A stretch of DNA of 64,000 nt from contig JBBPEB010000030.1 in assembly GCA_039096225.1 (NCBI GenBank), positions 310,001 through 374,000 of the forward strand, read 5' to 3'. Positions 7,401 to 52,036 of the stretch are shown here, in pieces. This DNA is from Blastocystis sp. Blastoise (Eukaryota > Protista > Bigyra: Opalinata). Position 1 is the first letter of the stretch. The number at the start of each line of letters is the position of its first letter. The translations under genes were made by a program, and so were the position numbers. The notes below the pieces were generated by a model. That model was not told the origin of the DNA. It saw only the letters and a list, made by a program, of their open reading frames with translations, and did not search any database.

Positions 7401-8174
7401 AATAATTTATAATAATAATACAATAATGTTAAAAAAAATAATAATAATAATATAATAACAAAACACAATAATAATTACATAATATATACATGTATAAAGG
7501 ATTCAAATGTTGATTTATTCGAAATATCTATAGAAGATTCACTATTTTGTATATCATTTTTATCTCGTAATTTATTACGTTCTCTCTCTTCATATAATCG
7601 CATCTATATAATATACGAAAAATTATATACATATATAGAATAAGAATAGCTTATATATACTTGATCTTTATTAGATCGTTGTAAATAATTTTGCATTTCC
7701 ATGATTAAATCAAATACAATTGTTTCTTTTTCTTTTTGTTGACAGTCAACAGCACAATCTATTAATTTTGATTTCAATTCAGCAACCTATTTGTAGAATA
7801 ATAATTTACTTTTTAAAGAAAAAAAAAGAAAAAAATACTTGACTTGTTGTTAATCCATCAGTAAATGTTAAATCAATCTTAGGACTATAAAAACATTATA
7901 TATATATATATTATATTAGAATAAAATACATTGTTTTAGGATAATTTGGCTGATATGTAATTACTAAATTTCCTTTAGCTTTAGATTCTTCAGTATAATC
8001 TGCAGGAACAAATATAGTTATCGACGGATATCCTGAAATAGATGTCTTCTCAGTGATATCTTTGTCGTAAATGAGTTTGAGAGCACTAATCTCTTCTTGT
8101 ATGTTAGATTTCCACGAATCTATATTTACAATATTCATCTTGTATTCATATTTGTTCATACCTTGCTTGTTCAT
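1..8174 (-). CDS. GCN2: eIF2-alpha kinase GCN2 (multi-exon; stop codon lies beyond position 1)
   Basis: Hand-spliced exons give an RWD domain ([11 protein letters not shown]...YQPNYP), then kinase motifs [79 protein letters not shown] HisRS-like region follows ([14 protein letters not shown]) and a GCN2-type tail ([14 protein letters not shown]). Confidence 0.93.
326..480. repeat. ~30-bp tandem repeat (about 5 copies) inside a GCN2 intron
   Basis: TTTATTGAATAAAAATAATATATATATATA repeated head to tail. Confidence 0.85.
1390..1520. repeat. 9-bp tandem repeat (ATATATAAA)n in a GCN2 intron
   Basis: Directly visible; produces the spurious YIF/KYI ORFs. Confidence 0.9.
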
Positions 8175-8594: not shown

Positions 8595-10655
8595 CTATAA
8601 TAGGTCAAAGAAATAATCAAGACCTAGAATCATTACTATATATATGAGAATAGGCAAAAAAATTCCCATTGGTCAGTTTTTGGAGAATGCATTTGATTGG
8701 CTACTATATACTATAGTTTGTCGCCGCAACTCCTCTAAACTTACGGGGAGTTAACTTTTGAGTGAAACACAGTTCAATACGATATAACGTGTAGTTGTGC
8801 ACCGTATATTTAGTTAAGCGATATTATTTATAACTAAAAAGTTATTAATAAAAGAACAGAAAACATGATTTTTGAGTCGTTTTTGATTGGCTCTTTGGGA
8901 TGACCCCGATAAAAATTGTTGACCAGATAATTGGAAAATAAACATGGGGTAAACTTGATTTTTTCTCAATCCCACAATATACGTTATCCGTGTTTATTCT
9001 TTATATTTATCTATTTTTTAATACTTTTTCATATTGAACACGTGAGGCCTTAACGGTCAAATTTAGATTCTTAATTTGACATCATATTCTGATTCAGGAG
9101 GTCAGAAAACCTAGGTGTAGCGATTTTGAGCTCCTGAAGACGATTTTTGAGTGATCGATATTTTCTTCGATCTTCTTATAATCGACTAATATTGTATCAT
9201 AGTAATCAATAGGTCATCAAACTACTATAGTAGAAACAGAGTCTTAAAATAATGAGTTTAAGTATGACAATTTTGAAAAATGTGAATTAAGTGGTCTTAG
9301 AGTGAGAGATTCAATATAATGACTTTTATTTAATAAACTAGAGATAATACTCTATACTATGTTAAAAGAAGAGTCAAAATTATGAAGGTCAAAGTGTATG
9401 ACCAAATGACAAAATGTGTCTTAAAAAGAAAAAGGGTTTGCATATGTGTATAGAATGTTAAGTCAAGTTTATTCTATGAATAAGAGCTTTAAATAAATAG
9501 TTTAAGGTTGTCAAATTCAAAAGAATGTGTAAAACATAGTCTTAGACTATGAATAAAAAATCTAGAGATATTAATTAGTGTACAGCTATAGTAGCCCTAC
9601 AACATATCAAAAGTACAGTTAAAATAATTTTTAAAGAGTGGATGTGTGAAGGGTTGTGACTATTATTTAAAATTTATTTTTACTTCAGTTTGATCAAAAT
9701 CGTGAATTTCGTGCACTGTAGAAAAATTGATTTAAAACGTCAACTCTAAGGGTCTTAAATTTAAATAAATGTAAAAATGAGTGACTTAGAGGACGAGATT
9801 CAAAATAAGAGTGTTTATTCATTAAACTAGAGTGTATGACCTATATTATGTCAAAAGAAGGGACGAAAATATTTTGATCAAAGTGTATGAGCAAATGGTA
9901 AAGTGTCTTTAAAAGTGTTATGGTGATGACAGTTGTGTTTATATGTCTGAATCAAGTCTATTCTTTAAATATTAACTTTAAATAGCAAGTTAAAGGTTGT
10001 CAATTTGTCAAAATGTTTTAAACACTGTCTTAAACAAAGAGATTCAAGAAGTTGACTTTCATTTTATACATAATATGTCTATATAAACACTTTACTAAAA
10101 GAACTTTGGAAAATATTGTGGATGAGTGTTTTGTCAAATGGTAAAGTTGTATCAAGAGTGAATTGTTTCCATTCCTTTTTGTTTAAATCAATGTTTTATG
10201 TCCACTCTATAAAAACTATCTTTTAATACTGAGTTTAACGTTTTAAAGTCAACATGTGTGTTTGGTTTGCTTACTTTTGAGAGTTGAAAATCAGTTTAAA
10301 TTGATAAATTATGTCATAGACGTCTATATTAATTGATTCAAACAGTTTTGAGATGACTTAGTTGTTTGAGTTAAAATGGATTTGTTCTCATTGTGACTGT
10401 TGTTGAGAAGAGGAAGTCTAAAAAAACTATAAACAGTTAGATATATGTATATAATGTCAAAATTTAAAAGGTATAATCTAAAAGAGATAAAAATAAGTTT
10501 AAAAAAAGAGAAAATATATATATATATATAATATGTAAAAAATATTAAAGAAAAAGAAAAATAAGACTTCATGTCAGGAATTGAACCTGAAAACAATCTA
10601 TAATGATTGTTTCTCTCCTTCTAGAGCATAAAGGGAGTTTATAAATAATAATAAT

Positions 10656-10692
<37 letters not shown>

Positions 10693-11248
10693 TATATATA
10701 TAGATATAGATATATATATATATATATAATAAGGAGGAAGTAGGAAGTAGGAAGTAGGAAGGAAGAAGGAAGAAGGAAGGAGGAAGTTTAAGAAGGAAGG
10801 ATGAAGAAGTAAGAAGGAAGGATGAAGAAGAAGGAAGAAAGAAGGATGAGGAAGAAGGAAGTAGGAAGAATCAAGGATGGGGAAGAAGAAAGAAGAAAGA
10901 AGGAAGAAGGAAGGAGGAAGAAGAATGAAGAACCAAGGTGAAGAAGAAGGGAGAAGTAAGAAGTAAGTACGAAGAATGAAGGAAGAAGGAAGAAGAAGGA
11001 AGAAGGAGGAAGAAGTAAAGAATGAAAAGAAAGAAGGCAGAAAGAAGAAGGAAGAATGAAGAAGGAAGAAGGAAGAAGAAGGAAGGAAGAATGAAGTAAG
11101 TAGGAAGGATGAGGAAGAAGGAAGAAGTAAGAAGGAAGAAGAACGAAGATAGAAAGAAGAAAAAAAAAAACTAAGAAGAATATTAAACCTATATACAATA
11201 AATAAACATAATAAATAAATAAATAAATAAATAAATAATAAACAATAA

Positions 11249-11279
<31 letters not shown>

Positions 11280-14200
11280 ATTAATAAATAAATAAACATA
11301 TAAAAAAAATGAATAAATAAATAATAAATAAATAAATAAATAATAAAAAAAAATGTAAACAATAAATAATAAAAATAATAAATAAAATATAAATATATAC
11401 CTTTAAAATAACCTTGAACGACAGATTAAAGAAGGAAAATATTTAGCAACGAAGACCACAACACATCCATTGAAGTTTCTTTCCTATAGAATAAAAATTA
11501 TTAATAATATATAGAATAAATTATATGTAAAGACTAAATAAATAATATTGATAATAAAAATAATAAATAATAAAAACGAATTAACAAAAAGAAAAACAGA
11601 TCTTAAGAAATAAATAATATATTTATATACCTGATCATAAATAAACCATTTTACACAGCCAAGACCACTTCAAGAACACTTCACCACTATAACGAAGACA
11701 AATACAAAACAATCCTATAGAAAATGAAATATTTTAAATGAATAAATCAATATATACAAATAAATATAATAATAATAACTAAACAATATCAAATAAATAA
11801 ATAAAACATACTCAGTCAATCAATATAATAAAATATTTAAAAAATGTAAAAAACTATGTTTTTTGGGTACCCTAAATATTTTTAATAGAAAATGACCCAA
11901 TTATTACTTTTGTAAATAAATCAATGAAAATTCAAGGGTTTTTTAATTTCTATTAATTTTTAAGAAGCATATTTTTAAAATAGACCCTATTCTTTAAAAG
12001 TGGAAATATAAACACAATTTTTATATTAAGAGAAAACACTTATTTTTTATAATTAAAATATTATCTAAGATGCCTCAGAAGGCATGATGCTGTCAAGATC
12101 GAAGTGTGTAGATGGAAAAATATACATTTCTCAAAAACTTTCAGGTATATTGTATCTATTTTTTATTATTATTCGTATATAGGTTCTTCTACTCAATAGG
12201 ATCCAGTTGTGTATGTTCTTGGTCTTGGTATTACTTGCTCTGATGGTCTTAAAGGTATATATTTTCCGTTTCTTTTTTTTTAATTATTTATTATATTATT
12301 TTAGGTTCTTCTATGTTATTTGTATCATACGGAGGCTGTGGTGTTGCCTGTTATGCTAACTGTGAAGGTATGTTGTCAATGATTTGTTTTTATTTTTTTA
12401 ATTTTATTTATTTATAGGTTCTTCTGTTGTTTTAAATGATGCTAATGGTTCTAATGATGTGATTGTAGGTTCTTCTTATTGTATTGAAGGTATGTTGCCA
12501 ATCATTTAATTTATTTTTATATTTTATTATTATTTTTTTATTATTTCTATATATATATATAGGTTCTTCAGTTGCTGTGCATGTTGACAGTGGTGTTGAT
12601 GATAGATGTCTGTGTGGTGTTGAAGGTATGTTGTCATTCATTTATTTTTCTTTTTTTACTTTTATATATATTTAGGTTCTTCTGATGCTTTCAATACTGC
12701 TGTTGATGTTGTTGGTGATCAGATAGACTGTTCCTATGGTATTAAAGGTATATATATATATTGTCATTCATTTATTATTATTATTTTTTTATTTATTATT
12801 TGTCTATTACTGTTTCTTTATAGGTTCTTTTATTGTTGTGTGTGTGGTTGCTGAAGGTGTTAATAATTAAGGTATGTCTATTTTTTTAATTTAATTTAGT
12901 TTATTTTTATTTATTATTTATATATAGGTCCTTCTATTCTGATCGAGTCTTCTATTATAGGTAATGAAAGGTATATACTTATTTCTTCCTTTCTTTTTTT
13001 TTTAATTTATTAATTATCTTATCATTATATATAGGTTCTTCAAGTCAGTTATGATATGATACTTATTTTTCTGTTCCTTCTTTAGAAGGTATATATATTT
13101 TTATTGTTTATATATTTTTTATTATTTATTATATATAGGTGTCTTTTCTAATAGGGGATCTTATCACCCTAATGTTGGCTTTTATTTTAATAATAAAAAT
13201 ATATCTAAAGGTATATATATATATATATATATATAACAAATATTTATATTTCTTTTAATATATATATCTATATATTTTATCTATATAGTGATGGTGTAAA
13301 TAGTTCTTTAATGCTGAAGGTATATATATATATATTTATCTTTTATTTCTATAGGTTCTTCTAATTTGGTTGGCATACTTAACATATTATTTTATTTTTG
13401 TTTTGTTTTGTTTTGCTTTGTTTATTATTATTATTTTTTTTTTTTTCACAGATAATATCTTTCTATTATCTGTTTTCTTAGTATTATTTATTTATTTTTG
13501 TTTTGTTCGTTTTTTATAATTTTTATTGTGCTTACTATTAAGATAATTTTGAAATTAGTTAATGTTATTAGTATGTGGTCCTTAATATTGTTTTAATTTA
13601 TAATAACATTCATTTATCACCTAATCTGATATAGACTAGCGATATAATTACATCAATGATTGAGTTATTATTAAGTTTTGTATTCTCCACTTTCATTTAT
13701 ATATTTAATTATGTGTAAAATTTTAAGCAATAAGAAATGTGAAAAAATAGGTTATTAAATTAAGAGATTTAAAATTATAGAAATTGTTTAATATAGAACA
13801 ACATGTACTCTACAACATATTAAAAAATAAGAGAATTTCATTTTTGACAAGTGAATTAAGAATGCGTTTGAGTTGTTCAGAAATTTTAAAGAGTAAGTCT
13901 ATTCTTTTAAAATTGTGTTTTTGTTATACTATGAAAATTTTGACTTTTAAAAACAAGTTTAAAGGGATTATTTTTTTAAAATGTAGAAATGAATTATCCA
14001 AAGGACGAGATTCAATATAAAACATTTTATTTATCAAACTATTATTTATAGTCTGAATTATATTAAAAGGAGGGACAAAAATACTCTTGACAAAGTGTAT
14101 GACCAAATGAAAAATGTTTATAAAGAGTGTCAAAATGGTAGCTAATGTATTGATAGAGTTATGTTGAGCATAGTGTTAAAATATAAGCTTTTTAAATTAA

Positions 14201-17174
14201 CTATAAGTGTGTTAACTTTTCAAAATGTATAAAAAAGGGTCTTTAGGTCAGAGATTCAAGACATTCAACTATAAGTAATATATGAAATAATGAGATCTAT
14301 ACTATGTGAAAGTTATGTCTAAAACTATTTTGATACACTGGATATCAAAATGGTGAAGTCTCTTTACAAGCGATATTGTTGACACTTTTATGTATAGAAA
14401 TGCTTTTTAGAGTGACTTTATTAATATTAATTCTAAAACTATGTGTTTAAGTCGTTAAAGTGAAAATGAATGTTGACTTTGTTGTGTTAGATTCGTTTTA
14501 GTTTTATGAAATGGTTAAAGAAAGTGTAAACTACCTTATTATAATCTATTTAAAATGATTTTACATAATAATGACTTTCAATACTTAACATTGTGACCCA
14601 TTTCTAAATTTATTAGCTTTAGAAACTCCATAATAATTAAAGCAGTAACTCAACTATTTATAAATACAAAATATATTTTTAAAATAATAAATAACAAATA
14701 TAATGATTCAAAAACGATTTCTTATTTTTTTTATAGTATTGTTTTTAGTTTTTCAGATACTATTCAAAAGTAAATTTTAATTCTTATATCAGGAATTGAA
14801 CCTGATTACAATCAATATATGATTGTAACTCTCCATATAGAGTATAAGAAGTGTTAATAAAATAATATATATAATATATAATAAGTAACATATTATAGAT
14901 AATAAGTAACATATTATAGATAATATTTAATAAATAATATATATTATATAATATATAGTAGATAATAAGGAAAGAAAGTGAATAAAAACAAAACACTTAT
15001 TATTCATTGCAGCCGCGGTCCGGTGCCGTTAGGCCCCGGACCTGCGGCGTGACCCTAGTAGATATATAATAATAATAATAATCAAAAAAACATATATATA
15101 AATAAAAAATACCTTGTCCTAATTCCCAGATAGAATATCCGATATTTCTTTGTTTACATAAATCTAAACGTTCTTGAATACTGTATAATGTAGGATAATA
15201 AACTTCATGAATTTTTCCATTTTTAATATATCTAAAAAAGAGAATATAATAATTAAATATAATAGATAAAAAAGATATATAAAAAGATATATAAAAAGAT
15301 ATATAAAAATGATATAAAAAATATATAGAATATAATATATATAAAATGATATAAAAAAATATATAGAATAAAATATATTGAATATAATACATATAAAATG
15401 ATATATAAAAATGATATAAAAAGAATATATATGAATAAATAAAGTTATAGAATACTTAAATGAATGTTCTTTAGAATCTTTATGAAATGTAAAAGGTACA
15501 TTCTGTGACATTAATATATCAATATAACCATTATTAATAATAGGTTCCGTTATATCATATCTATAGTATATATATATATTAATAATAATAATATTTATAT
15601 AATAATATTATTATATATATATATATACCCATAAAAAGCAATACCTAATAATAGTTTCTTTTGAATACTATTTTTAGTTGATTTTTCAAATAAATTCAAA
15701 AATGTATCAATATCATCCTCAACGTTCTATTTTATAATGAATAGATATGATGTATAGAATAGTATATATGATAATACATAAATATACGTGAATAGGAGCA
15801 TTAGGTCCAATTTTTCCTTGTCTTACACTGTAATCATAAGTCATTAATACAAAATAATCAATTATCTATATGTATATATATATAATTTTAAAAGATATAT
15901 ATACATAGATTAATATTTATGTACTTTAGAAATTGAATTTGAGATTGATAAAGTATTTAAGTGGTTCATATAGGCAACTATATAAATATATATATATATA
16001 TATTTAAATAACTAATTTATACAATAAGAAGGATTCACAGTTGAAATTAAAATAAATTGTTTATTTGGATTAATTGTATATAATAATTCACGAATTAATG
16101 TATATATAGATATTGTAGATTCTGTTAAAGGTAATTCTAACACAAATCCATCAAAATCATATTCATTAAGAAGAAGTGTCATTGAATTCAGTAGCGTTTC
16201 TTTATCCTATAGAAAAAAAATAACAAAAAAAATTTATATAGATATATAAATAAATAAATATTAATAAAACCATAATTAACAAAAATAGAATATATTTTTT
16301 TTAATTTTATTATAATAAATACTTGTGATTGAATGCCTTGTATATTAAAAGTGACACGAGGAAGAAGAAGAGGACAATGGATATTATGAATACAAGAATC
16401 ACGAATATTCTTTATCCATTCATCATTTATTGTATTTGATACTGATATAATAACACTATTATCTTGATCTCTATAAATATATATATATAGTATGTAGATA
16501 ATATATATATATCTATACTTAAAAAAAACAAAAAAAACATAAATAAATGTTATTTATAATTATTATCTATATTTTTATTTCATAAAAATTCTATATATAC
16601 TTTATTTCTAGCCAGCAAGGGGATAACATATCAAATTTTTCAATAAATAATGACGAGAAATCATATCCTTGTGAATATTATTAAGAAATACTCAATAGTT
16701 CATATGTTGATATTATTATATTAGAATTTATATTAGTACTTATGTAAAAAATATTTATATATATAAAGATATTTGTATTCCATGACGTTAGAAATCCAAG
16801 GCTAGGATTTGTGAAATGACGGTGAGTAGTATTTGAACTATATCGTTGATATTCATCTAGAATCACAGAACGAGATAATTTTTGTGTTACTAAATGACGT
16901 TCAAAAACCTATATATTGTCAAACAAGAATAATATATATAAAAATATACGATTTATATATATATTATAATTATTTATATATCGAATATATTATAAATCGT
17001 TTAAAGCATATAAATCAATATATATACGGATTCTTCTGGATGTTTTGGAGTAATATCTTTTAAGACATATTTCTTTTGAGGAATCGATAATTTAGATCTT
17101 CCTTCTGATATGTCCAGCATACATATAATTAAAAAAAGAAATGAATAGCACGATAATGAAAAACAGCAGACCAT
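8595..17174 (-). CDS. CHID1: Chitinase domain-containing protein 1 (GH18-like); last intron interrupted by a Helitron; possibly decaying
   Basis: Signal peptide MVCCFSLSCYSFLFLII, then LGFLTSW, KFDMLSPCWLEI, LLLPRVTF, YDFDGFVLE, LMTYDYS...GPNAP, KLLLGIAFYG, EHSFKY, HEVYYPTLYSIQERL...GYSIWELGQG. The family terminal exon GLDYFFDLL* is at 8595-8623. Confidence 0.88.
9240..10300. repeat. Diverged tandem repeat inside the Helitron (~245-bp subunits, ~490-bp dimer)
   Basis: GAGATTCAA...AAACTAGAG...AAAAGAAG...CAAAGTGTATGA(C/G)CAAATG recurs at ~9306 and ~9795; GAGATTCAA again at ~10039. Confidence 0.75.
10567..10633 (-). ncRNA. tRNA-like cloverleaf, copy 1 (non-canonical, non-decoding)
   Basis: Minus strand reads CTTTATG CTCT-AGAAGG-AGAG AAACAATC-ATTATA-GATTGTTT TCAGG-TTCAATT-CCTGA CATGAAG. 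Perfect B-box, T-runs downstream. Confidence 0.75.
10640..11850 (-). ncRNA. Putative spliced non-coding transcript inside the Helitron
   Basis: Exon-like segments 11631-11714 and 11401-11483 are bounded by TAG|...|GTAT; donor at 11810-11811, acceptor at 11189-11190. The 84-nt exon has stops in all three frames. Confidence 0.5.
10731..11160. repeat. Polypurine (GAA/GAAG)-rich low-complexity tract
   Basis: About 430 bp almost entirely G/A on the + strand. Confidence 0.9.
12084..13400 (+). other. Array of about 12 micro-exons (mostly phase 1-1, GTTCTTC...(G/A)AAG) inside the Helitron
   Basis: Exons 12183-12254 (72), 12305-12367 (63), 12418-12489 (72), 12563-12625 (63), 12676-12747 (72), 12824-12871 (48), 12928-12960/12970, 13035-13088 (54), 13139-13210 (72), 13289-13319 and 13355 onward, each between TAG and GTA. 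An in-frame ATG exon is at 12084-12144. Confidence 0.8.
13880..14880. repeat. Diverged duplicate of the ~9700-10660 block (offset about 4.2 kb), including the tRNA-like element
   Basis: GGACGAGATTCAA at ~14003 matches ~9790; CAAAGTGTATGACCAAATG is shared; GAGATTCAAGA at ~14251 matches ~10039; TCAGGAATTGAACCTGA at 14789 matches 10574. Confidence 0.8.
14781..14850 (-). ncRNA. tRNA-like cloverleaf, copy 2 (non-canonical, non-decoding)
   Basis: Minus strand reads TTCTTATA CTCT-ATATGG-AGAG TTACAATC-ATATATT-GATTGTAA TCAGG-TTCAATT-CCTGA TATAAGAA, with compensatory changes relative to copy 1. Confidence 0.75.
15012..15058 (+). terminator. Helitron 3' terminal hairpin plus CTAG
   Basis: GCCGC GGTCCGG T GCC GTTA GGC C CCGGACC T GCGGC then gtgaccCTAG; an extreme GC island in AT-rich DNA. 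Confidence 0.9.
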
Positions 17175-51180: not shown

Positions 51181-51757
51181 GTCTTACAAATATCACACAA
51201 ATAAAAGCACAAATAAAACAAACAATTAAGGACCACTAAGGTTTTGAGCAAACGATTTTAAATGAATCTATAAGATTTATATGATTTATAATTCAAAAAG
51301 TTTATTACATAAAACTATGTGTTTTAAGAGAAACAAAAATTCAAAAAGTGATAAATGTTCCATTTCAAAGTGGAATGAAAATTCTCAAGAATAAAAGTTA
51401 TATAATACTTGAGCGTGTATAGTTTCCCATAAATAATTTTTGTCCTCATATTTGAAATTCAAATGTTGTCATTTGGCGAGTTAAGAAACTTGTTCTATAG
51501 CATAATTCTCTCTTTCCTGATTTCAAAAATGTTTTAAATTGAAATTTTAAATGAAAAATGATCAAAATATTCACATTCAGAGTTCGCAAGTCTTTTTTCA
51601 ATTTGATTTGAGCTTTTTTAGTATTCTTGTATTTCTGATTACTCATTTTAATGATGATTCCATAAATGTTTTTTCATTTAGTTCACTATATGAAGAAATG
51701 GGCAAAAAAGACCATACTGTATATCCATCTATAGATGTGAAAATTTCGGTTCAACTT

Positions 51758-51830
51758 GCGGCTTTAGCTCAGCTGGAAGAGCATAGGTCTCATAATCCTA
51801 AGGTCATGAGTTCGATCCTCATAAGCCGCA
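51758..51830 (+). tRNA. tRNA-Met(CAT), elongator type
   Basis: GCGGCTT/AAGCCGC acceptor, GCTC/GAGC D arm, TAGGT-CTCATAA-TCCTA anticodon arm, ATGAG-TTCGATC-CTCAT T arm, followed by TTTTT. Confidence 0.97.
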
Positions 51831-52036
51831 TCTTTTTATGTTGTTCCTCTTTTTTTTTGTTTTGTTTAGAATAGTTTATTTATTTAAAAAATAATGAATA
51901 ACAACATAAGAATAGAATAGAATGAAAAATAATAAATACAAAAAAAGAGAAAAAATAATTATAATAAGCAATAAAATATATTTTGTTGTTTTTGTATGTA
52001 AAAAGAGAGATTTATCATATAATAAAAAAGATAAAA

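Follow-up and report, generated by a model that had tools for sequence, protein, structure and literature searches.

A Helitron in the genome of Blastocystis sp. Blastoise, a protist of the tortoise gut, carries at fixed antisense positions two members of a selectively maintained, non-decoding family of elements shaped like transfer RNA (tRNA). The copy described here lies in a stretch of 64,000 nucleotides (nt) of contig JBBPEB010000030.1 (positions 310,001 to 374,000 of the forward strand), which we refer to as the window; positions given without further address are counted from its first letter. The genome is intron-rich, comprises 33.34 Mb in 34 contigs and has a GC content of ~22%. Mimicry of tRNA is known from viruses, from short interspersed elements (SINEs) and from two vertebrate long non-coding RNAs (lncRNAs). 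The genome paper on tortoise Blastocystis strains puts transposable elements at 5.6-7.5% and mentions neither a tRNA nor a tRNA-like element (PMC12129017), and full-text searches of the literature returned no description of a tRNA-like element in Helitrons, or of Blastocystis Helitrons carrying one. The best reading, as far as the sequences indicate, is that the elements act as an RNA-level mimic of tRNA that would be under selection.

A selectively maintained, non-decoding cloverleaf family

A preliminary description of the window had proposed two cloverleaves on the minus strand of the Helitron, and both their coordinates and their folding bear this out. We name the elements by the type of their acceptor stem: the two in the window Helitron are class A and class B (Table 1), and classes C and D come from other loci. 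Classes A and B each consist of four arms without connector nucleotides. Both have a D-like arm of CTCT/AGAG with an A..GG loop, and they share an identical T arm, TCAGG-TTCAATT-CCTGA, which occurs exactly twice in the window and never in shuffles. Folded on its own, each adopts the cloverleaf, with a minimum free energy of -19.4 kcal/mol for class A (z -3.4) and of -22.0 kcal/mol for class B (z -3.9; z is taken against dinucleotide shuffles throughout), and the cloverleaf is kept when 10-nt flanks are added to the folding. A covariance model (R1), which was used to score elements, gives class A 92.3 bits and class B 93.5 bits.

How have the two elements diverged from each other? All 24 of 24 pairs are formed in both and none is broken; five pairs are altered on both sides (three in the acceptor, two in the middle arm) and there is one wobble change, so that the five compensatory changes and single G-U counted earlier hold up arm by arm. 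When 11 random substitutions were placed over the 48 stem positions in a simulation, all pairs stayed intact in only 4 of 2,000,000 trials (P ~2e-6). Each element heads one of two old paralogous modules, and the description of the surrounding duplicated blocks as heavily diverged is likewise correct: a global alignment of the modules gives 33-44 identities per 60 columns outside the element versus 49 of 60 over it. BLAST between the modules recovers parts only, at 68-76% identity (self-BLAST: 9696-10049 against 13909-14261, 68%; 10571-10731 against 14786-14953, 76%).

Covariation is equally apparent beyond the window. We analysed 55 copies, 53 of them of class A or B, and aligned their 14 distinct sequences (classes A-D); aligned sequences and copies alike are related by descent. 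In this alignment 96.1% of the cells are paired, 10 of 24 pairs show two-sided changes and the covariation score is 0.278, values that none of 500 shuffles reached. Sliding the partners by 1-3 columns lowers pairing to 40-47% and leaves 0-2 such pairs. It is the acceptor and middle arms that covary. None of the five T-arm pairs changes, nor does most of the D arm, and every one of the 14 distinct sequences has the D-loop GG and the TTCAATT loop. Classes C and D also fold by themselves as cloverleaves, with weak outer middle-arm pairs and a slightly more tRNA-like form. Uncompensated stem disruption in other copies, for which the preliminary description had suggested looking, is not what the alignment and the scores reveal: all 55 copies reach at least 70 bits under the covariance model, and there are no intermediates. 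Since G-U pairs exceed A-C mismatches (9 cells versus 1 cell, or about six events to one) and since the T-loop and D-loop motifs are tRNA-like only when the minus strand is read, the evidence points to the minus strand as the one that folds.

Sequence variation among copies gives a concordant picture. Nucleotide diversity is 0.02 in class A (22 distinct segments) and 0.047 in class B (24 segments), compared with 0.10-0.30 in adjacent Helitron sequence. In a pile-up of 17-33 copies on the reference, classes A and B have values of 0.036 and 0.042, respectively, which places them within the top 5-6% of 67-nt windows, on a par with the 3' terminal hairpin (0.034) of the Helitron and ahead of its 5' end (0.052). 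Some Helitron blocks are more conserved than the elements, and the most conserved of all, 8830-9081, has a diversity of 0.004-0.025 in ~25 copies and thereby surpasses either terminus.

The elements are tRNA-like without being tRNAs, as had been surmised. ARAGORN, like Rfam, calls only a true tRNA-Met (51757-51832) in the window and neither element, and the proposed exclusion of known families by Rfam was carried out, with neither element reaching the gathering score of any family. The isolated class B element aligns end to end with the Rfam tRNA model (RF00005) at 17.1 bits, the gathering score being 29; isolated class A has no match to RF00005 at E<=10, and the mascRNA/menRNA family (RF01684) has no match to the isolated elements at E<=10. 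Weak Rfam matches to Plastid-ycf2 and snoRNA models were judged spurious, as they either scored far below threshold or concerned the opposite strand.

Which parts of a tRNA are retained, and which are lost? Classes A and B share with canonical tRNAs a 7+5 bp acceptor/T stack and an elbow formed by the D-loop GG and a TTCRA-type T loop. They do not show the canonical combination of a 7-nt anticodon loop, connector nucleotides 8, 9 and 26 and a variable loop. The loop at the anticodon position has 5, 6 or 7 nt, and its sequence varies both between and within classes. The proposal that structure and not decoding is maintained is therefore sustained, and the covariation behind it is real genome-wide. 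The B-box, which had been called perfect, proves to be near-perfect: it follows the consensus GGTTCGANTCC with one difference, an A for G at tRNA position 57, where tRNAs have a purine. The match to an A-box in the D region, as read from the sequence, is partial.

The Helitron carrier and other genomic settings

The identification of the carrier as a Helitron was sound. In more than 20 copies compared, which are 82-94% identical, the ends of the element are sharp. At least 20 copies begin with A/TC and finish with CTAG/T behind a GC-rich hairpin (slashes mark the borders). These termini make it a true Helitron on the + strand, inserted between A and T and having neither terminal inverted repeats nor a target-site duplication. 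Because it contains no long open reading frame (ORF), it is non-autonomous. An autonomous relative (locus L033) has a 1571-aa ORF with Helitron_like_N (1.9e-56) and PIF1 (2.1e-64) domains, and 250 nt past this RepHel ORF lies a 3' hairpin of the window-Helitron type together with CTAG. The arms of the two hairpins (L033:3541-3590 and window 15009-15058) differ by compensating changes, and the flanking GCAGCCGCGG, the GTTAGG loop and the final CCCTAG are unchanged. Both tRNA-like elements are antisense to the Helitron and bracket its central region. In most copies the distance of class A from the 5' end is 1.96-2.0 kb; it is greater in a few that contain additional repeat units. The distance of class B from the 3' end is usually 214-274 nt, and ~705 nt in a 3.16-kb tandem deletion derivative.

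The T arm allows the family to be counted. Its 17-nt pattern occurs 264 times in the 33-Mb genome at no more than one mismatch, and the reversed pattern, which served as a control, not once. Approximately 220 of the 264 have acceptor starts of class A or B, and the sites often form same-strand pairs ~4.2-4.3 kb apart, which is the spacing of A and B. Other acceptor starts account for 44 exact-match copies (31 'TC', 12 'CT' and one 'TT'). In 19 of the 31 'TC' copies the middle-arm strand GATTGTTA abuts the T arm, and because this junction is without a linker, these copies are tRNA-like and not real tRNAs. Three of the other acceptor classes are multi-copy. Class C, represented by three identical copies, lies 1.9 kb from an opposite-strand ORF with a DUF4371 (hAT-type) domain. 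Class D likewise numbers three identical copies, to which come four more diverged, D-like ones in inverted pairs 14 kb apart. These D-like pairs (G000:C2:180218/194396 and G000:C4:62929/76792) have 3 mismatches per 24-mer and so fall outside the T-arm set defined above; their inverted arrangement is as would be expected for the ends of a large terminal-inverted-repeat transposon. The two C and D loci that were compared have no similarity to the window Helitron. The tRNA-like element is consequently not confined to the window Helitron family, and the genome contains about 260-300 copies of it. A structure-anchored pattern had no match in viral contigs or JGI metagenome contigs. A host tRNA with the same T arm was sought as a possible ancestor and not found: none of the 63 scored RF00005 hits, which represent the best candidates only, coincides with a T-arm site.

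Given its tRNA-related fold, its B-box and its many copies, the family invites comparison with tRNA-derived SINEs, and the preliminary description had named an ordinary SINE, widespread outside Helitrons, as a finding that would undo its reading. For classes A and B the comparison fails, because 53 of the 55 copies are A/B copies at two fixed Helitron positions, have no tail or target-site duplications of their own and have stems that are held by compensatory change instead of decaying. Resting as it does on classes A and B, the check answers that condition in part; the 44 of 264 copies outside these classes include 31 dispersed 'TC' copies. A related idea is that the family is a neutral relic: a tRNA gene, or the head of a tRNA-derived SINE, would have been captured once, duplicated and spread, and its conservation would merely reflect the youth of the copies. 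Helitrons do capture host sequence, the copies do share a common descent, and the architecture is tRNA-derived, as the end-to-end alignment of class B with the Rfam tRNA model at 17 bits illustrates. However, the flanks of A and B have diverged almost to randomness, yet their 24 pairs were kept through five double changes, and four classes from differing carriers retain the fold. Neutrality is also at odds with the asymmetry between G-U and A-C, with a variability 3-8 times lower than that of adjoining Helitron DNA and with the absence of a single decayed copy among 55; the fixed internal position, in turn, is unlike a SINE. We consider a neutral relic improbable.

Fixed positions within a rolling-circle transposon might alternatively point to a step of transposition itself. 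A cloverleaf of single-stranded DNA could prime second-strand synthesis, or the RNA could prime synthesis on the peeled strand. The Helitron cycle includes a single-stranded intermediate, and rolling-circle plasmids use folded single-strand origins. The transferred strand, however, is the + strand, on which the observed G-U pairs become A-C mismatches, and the T-loop and D-loop motifs are of the type found in substrates of tRNA enzymes. Moreover, the covariance model did not find the element in the 3' end, the RepHel gene or the 1.4 kb upstream of the autonomous relative. A Helitron 5' segment with class A (L007) lies ~3.5 kb beyond the part of that locus that was examined, past the 2-kb interval C1:147001-149009, and the autonomous element may carry class A. 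The same fold also recurs in other repeated contexts, beside the DUF4371 ORF and in the inverted pairs. Such acceptor classes outside this Helitron weaken Helitron-specific ideas, the peeled-strand primer among them, and with two classes outside the family and three that are multi-copy, the role is therefore probably a general RNA one and not a rolling-circle step. A direct part in transposition accordingly seems to us most improbable.

Possible roles as a processing signal, polymerase III unit or TFIIIC site

How might a tRNA-shaped fold serve a transposon on its antisense strand? RNase P, RNase Z, the CCA-adding enzyme and, on the DNA, TFIIIC read exactly those parts of a tRNA that are conserved here: the family keeps the 7+5 bp acceptor/T stack and the elbow of D-loop GG and T-loop TTCAA, and the anticodon is not kept. 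We envision a scenario whereby the fold, once present in minus-strand transcripts, is cut by RNase P on its 5' side and by RNase Z on its 3' side. Class A would in this way form the 3' end of the Helitron's own antisense transcript, which would be pyrimidine-rich, non-coding and probably spliced, whereas class B, ~210-280 nt inside the 3' terminus, would sever transcripts that read in from flanking DNA. Antisense transcription of the transposon would thereby be ended or cut with no need of a poly(A) signal, and the same DNA may in addition bind TFIIIC via the B-box. We tentatively rank a cleavage signal for RNase P and RNase Z on antisense and read-in transcripts first among the possible roles, while conceding that it may well be wrong.

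The sequence context of the elements is what favours such a signal. A pyrimidine tract of ~550 nt starts at a putative AG acceptor (11189-11190), is followed by (TA)n and then runs into class A, and two putative short exons with AG/GT borders precede it. This tract, with its splice-like borders, argues for processing within a longer transcript. Classes B and D have no T4 run until ~+65 to +144 (class B none before ~+65 in most copies), and the lack of a nearby T-run terminator fits a signal that is embedded in longer transcripts. The occurrence of the fold in differing carriers favours a processing signal as well. Precedents exist in MALAT1 and NEAT1, the only lncRNAs known to use the tRNA-processing machinery, in which a tRNA-like fold at the 3' end is processed by RNase P and RNase Z (PMC12941219). 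Their structures combine a highly conserved T-like hairpin with a variable anticodon-like one (PMC12941219).

Several observations weigh against cleavage. Conservation among transposon copies is in part recent common ancestry. Class B has no element-internal transcription unit upstream, and a triple helix of the MALAT1 type, built from A-rich and U-rich tracts, was not found upstream of class A, where there is no A-rich tract. A (UA)-rich part upstream of class A could form a hairpin (z -3.75), and this may be chance, (TA)n being common in the genome. That the AU hairpin might stabilise the 3' end is only a weak idea, because (TA)n runs occur within 80 nt of 13% of the positions in the window. 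Further objections concern the arms themselves: across classes A-D, the T arm and a large part of the D arm show no sequence change and hence no covariation, which is more reminiscent of a DNA or protein recognition site (B-box/TFIIIC) than of a purely structural need. Finally, class A always has a T5 run at +5 (27 of 27 copies), class C has a T10 run at +10, and classes A and D have an 8-nt upstream motif, TATAAACT, in common, all of which would suit a transcription unit of RNA polymerase III (Pol III).

In the main rival reading, the elements are autonomous Pol III mini-genes, landing sites for TFIIIC, or both. The B-box and an A-box-like D region would then recruit TFIIIC and Pol III and give rise to a small, stable tRNA-like RNA, to a barrier resembling those of tRNA genes (tDNA) and extra-TFIIIC (ETC) sites, or to both; the barrier would flank the transcribed core of the Helitron and protect it against silencing or read-through. 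Invariance of the T arm with its B-box in 264 copies and across classes, in contrast to the covarying other stems, and near-invariance of the D arm speak for this reading, as does the position of two elements on either side of the central Helitron region. Terminator-like T runs near two of the four classes have a probability of ~0.03, given a background probability of 0.07 for T5 within 10 nt, and the short upstream motif is common to classes with different carriers. Against this stand the distant T4 runs of classes B and D and the merely partial A-box. Barriers of the tDNA/ETC type do resemble the present case in an invariant, near-consensus B-box and in two copies that bracket a core, but a barrier needs no RNA fold and the fold here covaries. 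TFIIIC alone thus leaves the compensatory changes in the acceptor and middle stems unexplained, and the RNA must matter also. Judged as a whole, a Pol III unit or TFIIIC site ranks second and is possible but doubtful. The two roles are not exclusive, and cleavage by RNase P and RNase Z could operate on a fold whose DNA also recruits TFIIIC.

Comparison with known systems helps to delimit the cleavage scenario. Like mascRNA and its NEAT1 (MEN-beta) counterpart, the Blastocystis elements are non-decoding cloverleaves of ~60-70 nt with a T-arm-like hairpin as their most conserved part and a variable anticodon-like arm; like them, they lie within a longer non-coding context and would make plausible substrates for RNase P and RNase Z. 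They differ in lacking sequence or Rfam-model similarity as well as a triple helix or A-rich tract upstream, and in being multi-copy and transposon-borne in a stramenopile protist, whereas the vertebrate elements are single-copy. The TMERs of murine gammaherpesvirus 68 are viral tRNA-like Pol III units that are joined to pre-miRNA hairpins and processed by tRNase Z (for background, see PMC4838037 and PMC7773990). Both systems may represent non-aminoacylated tRNA mimics with internal Pol III boxes in a parasitic element. Here, however, the carrier is a DNA transposon and not a virus, Pol III transcription is putative, and no stable hairpins lie downstream: the 150 nt following the elements have no significant structure (z -0.21 and +0.94), on which grounds TMER-like downstream hairpins were rejected. 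The t-elements of plant mitochondria and the tRNA-like structures at viral 3' ends likewise use tRNA mimicry as a processing or recognition signal in longer RNAs, the viral structures being aminoacylated 3' ends. Both belong to another compartment or replicon, and neither is homologous to the present family.

It is conceivable that the family represents a portable cassette, common to unrelated DNA transposons, in which a tRNA mimic enlists the host's RNase P and RNase Z, and maybe TFIIIC. By terminating or severing antisense transcripts and those that read in, the cassette would shield the transposons from transcriptional interference or silencing. We regard this with more doubt than confidence. 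If true, mobile elements would exploit the host RNA machinery in a new way, through a structurally selected, non-decoding mimic that is part of DNA transposons. A little-studied gut eukaryote would then have supplied a compact natural cassette by which RNA 3' ends form independently of poly(A) or Pol III is recruited. No transposon, and nothing outside vertebrates, would have been seen before to use tRNA-like 3' processing of the MALAT1 type.

Mapped features and further observations

Table 1. Elements, Helitron parts and putative transcript features in the window
Feature	Position	Strand	Structure or basis
tRNA-like element, class A	10567-10633	-	7-bp acceptor (one U-G), 4-bp D-like arm, 8-bp middle arm with 6-nt loop, 5-bp T arm
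tRNA-like element, class B	14781-14850	-	8-bp acceptor, D-like and T arms as in class A, 8-bp middle arm with 7-nt loop
Non-autonomous Helitron, 6,429 bp, carrier of both elements	8630-15058	+	sharp repeat boundaries, termini
Helitron 3' terminal GC-rich hairpin ending CTAG	15009-15058	+	diversity 0.034
Paralogous module 1 (holds class A)	9696-10731		self-BLAST, global alignment
Paralogous module 2 (holds class B)	13909-14953		self-BLAST, global alignment
Array of short repeated exon-like units (ag/GTTCTTC...) between the elements	12084-13400	+	repeat families D7, D12, D13
T5 run 5 nt past the class A 3' acceptor strand (Pol III terminator-like)	10557-10561	-	sequence
Polypyrimidine (CTTCCT-like) tract with (TA)n, adjoining class A on its upstream side; putative terminal exon of a spliced minus-strand unit	10634-11188	-	sequence only, splicing putative
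Two putative short exons (11714-11631 and 11483-11413), AG/GT borders, upstream of the pyrimidine tract	11413-11714	-	sequence only

Within the Helitron, a 36-nt motif (beginning AGTGTATGA.CAAATG; family D19) occurs five times, at 9393, 9882, 10125, 14094 and 14337, with a spacing of 243/489 nt and inside both modules. Elsewhere in the genome, Helitrons occur nested in one another or in tandem. A non-autonomous copy (L034:2027-8910) is nested in a RepHel (PIF1 helicase) ORF on the minus strand (1337-2026 and 8884-9999), and a weak, 95-nt covariance-model match at the same locus (L034:207-301) turned out to be spurious on folding. At another locus, a RepHel ORF (L040:1-1761) abuts a Helitron 3' end at 1761, again a Helitron nested in a Helitron. 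Two further loci, L047 and L048 (G000:C4:1504001-1514000 and 1533001-1543000), consist of head-to-tail tandem arrays of the 3.16-kb deletion derivative, which comprises the 5' 1.4 kb and the 3' module and therefore has class B only; in the arrays, CTAG is followed after 2 nt by the next TC start.

The closest relatives of the RepHel protein outside this genome, at 42-43% identity, come from squamate reptiles and a pseudoscorpion and not from other protists, and three other RepHel families of the same Blastocystis genome are only 38-39% identical to it. Horizontal transfer involving reptile hosts is possible on the strength of these identities. The Blastocystis proteins among the best 120 matches of the protein search were all from this genome; the other two tortoise isolates, Rus-S and Hermann's, with 56% amino-acid identity at the most distant, contributed none.

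Two small contigs (G000:C9 and G000:C12) share one densely packed set of high-scoring tRNA genes, the order in one mirroring that in the other, and are probably two copies or orientations of the genome of a mitochondrion-related organelle. At the right border of the window Helitron, a minus-strand ORF (15000-15392) runs from host DNA into the Helitron 3' terminus and ends at a stop codon within the transposon (15000-15002); class B is located ~150 nt downstream of this ORF on the same strand. An identity of the ORF (15003-15392) as CHID1 was considered and not confirmed, the exon having no match in Pfam. Just left of the Helitron, on the minus strand (7914-8174), lies an exon that encodes an RWD domain (E 2e-5), consistent with GCN2.

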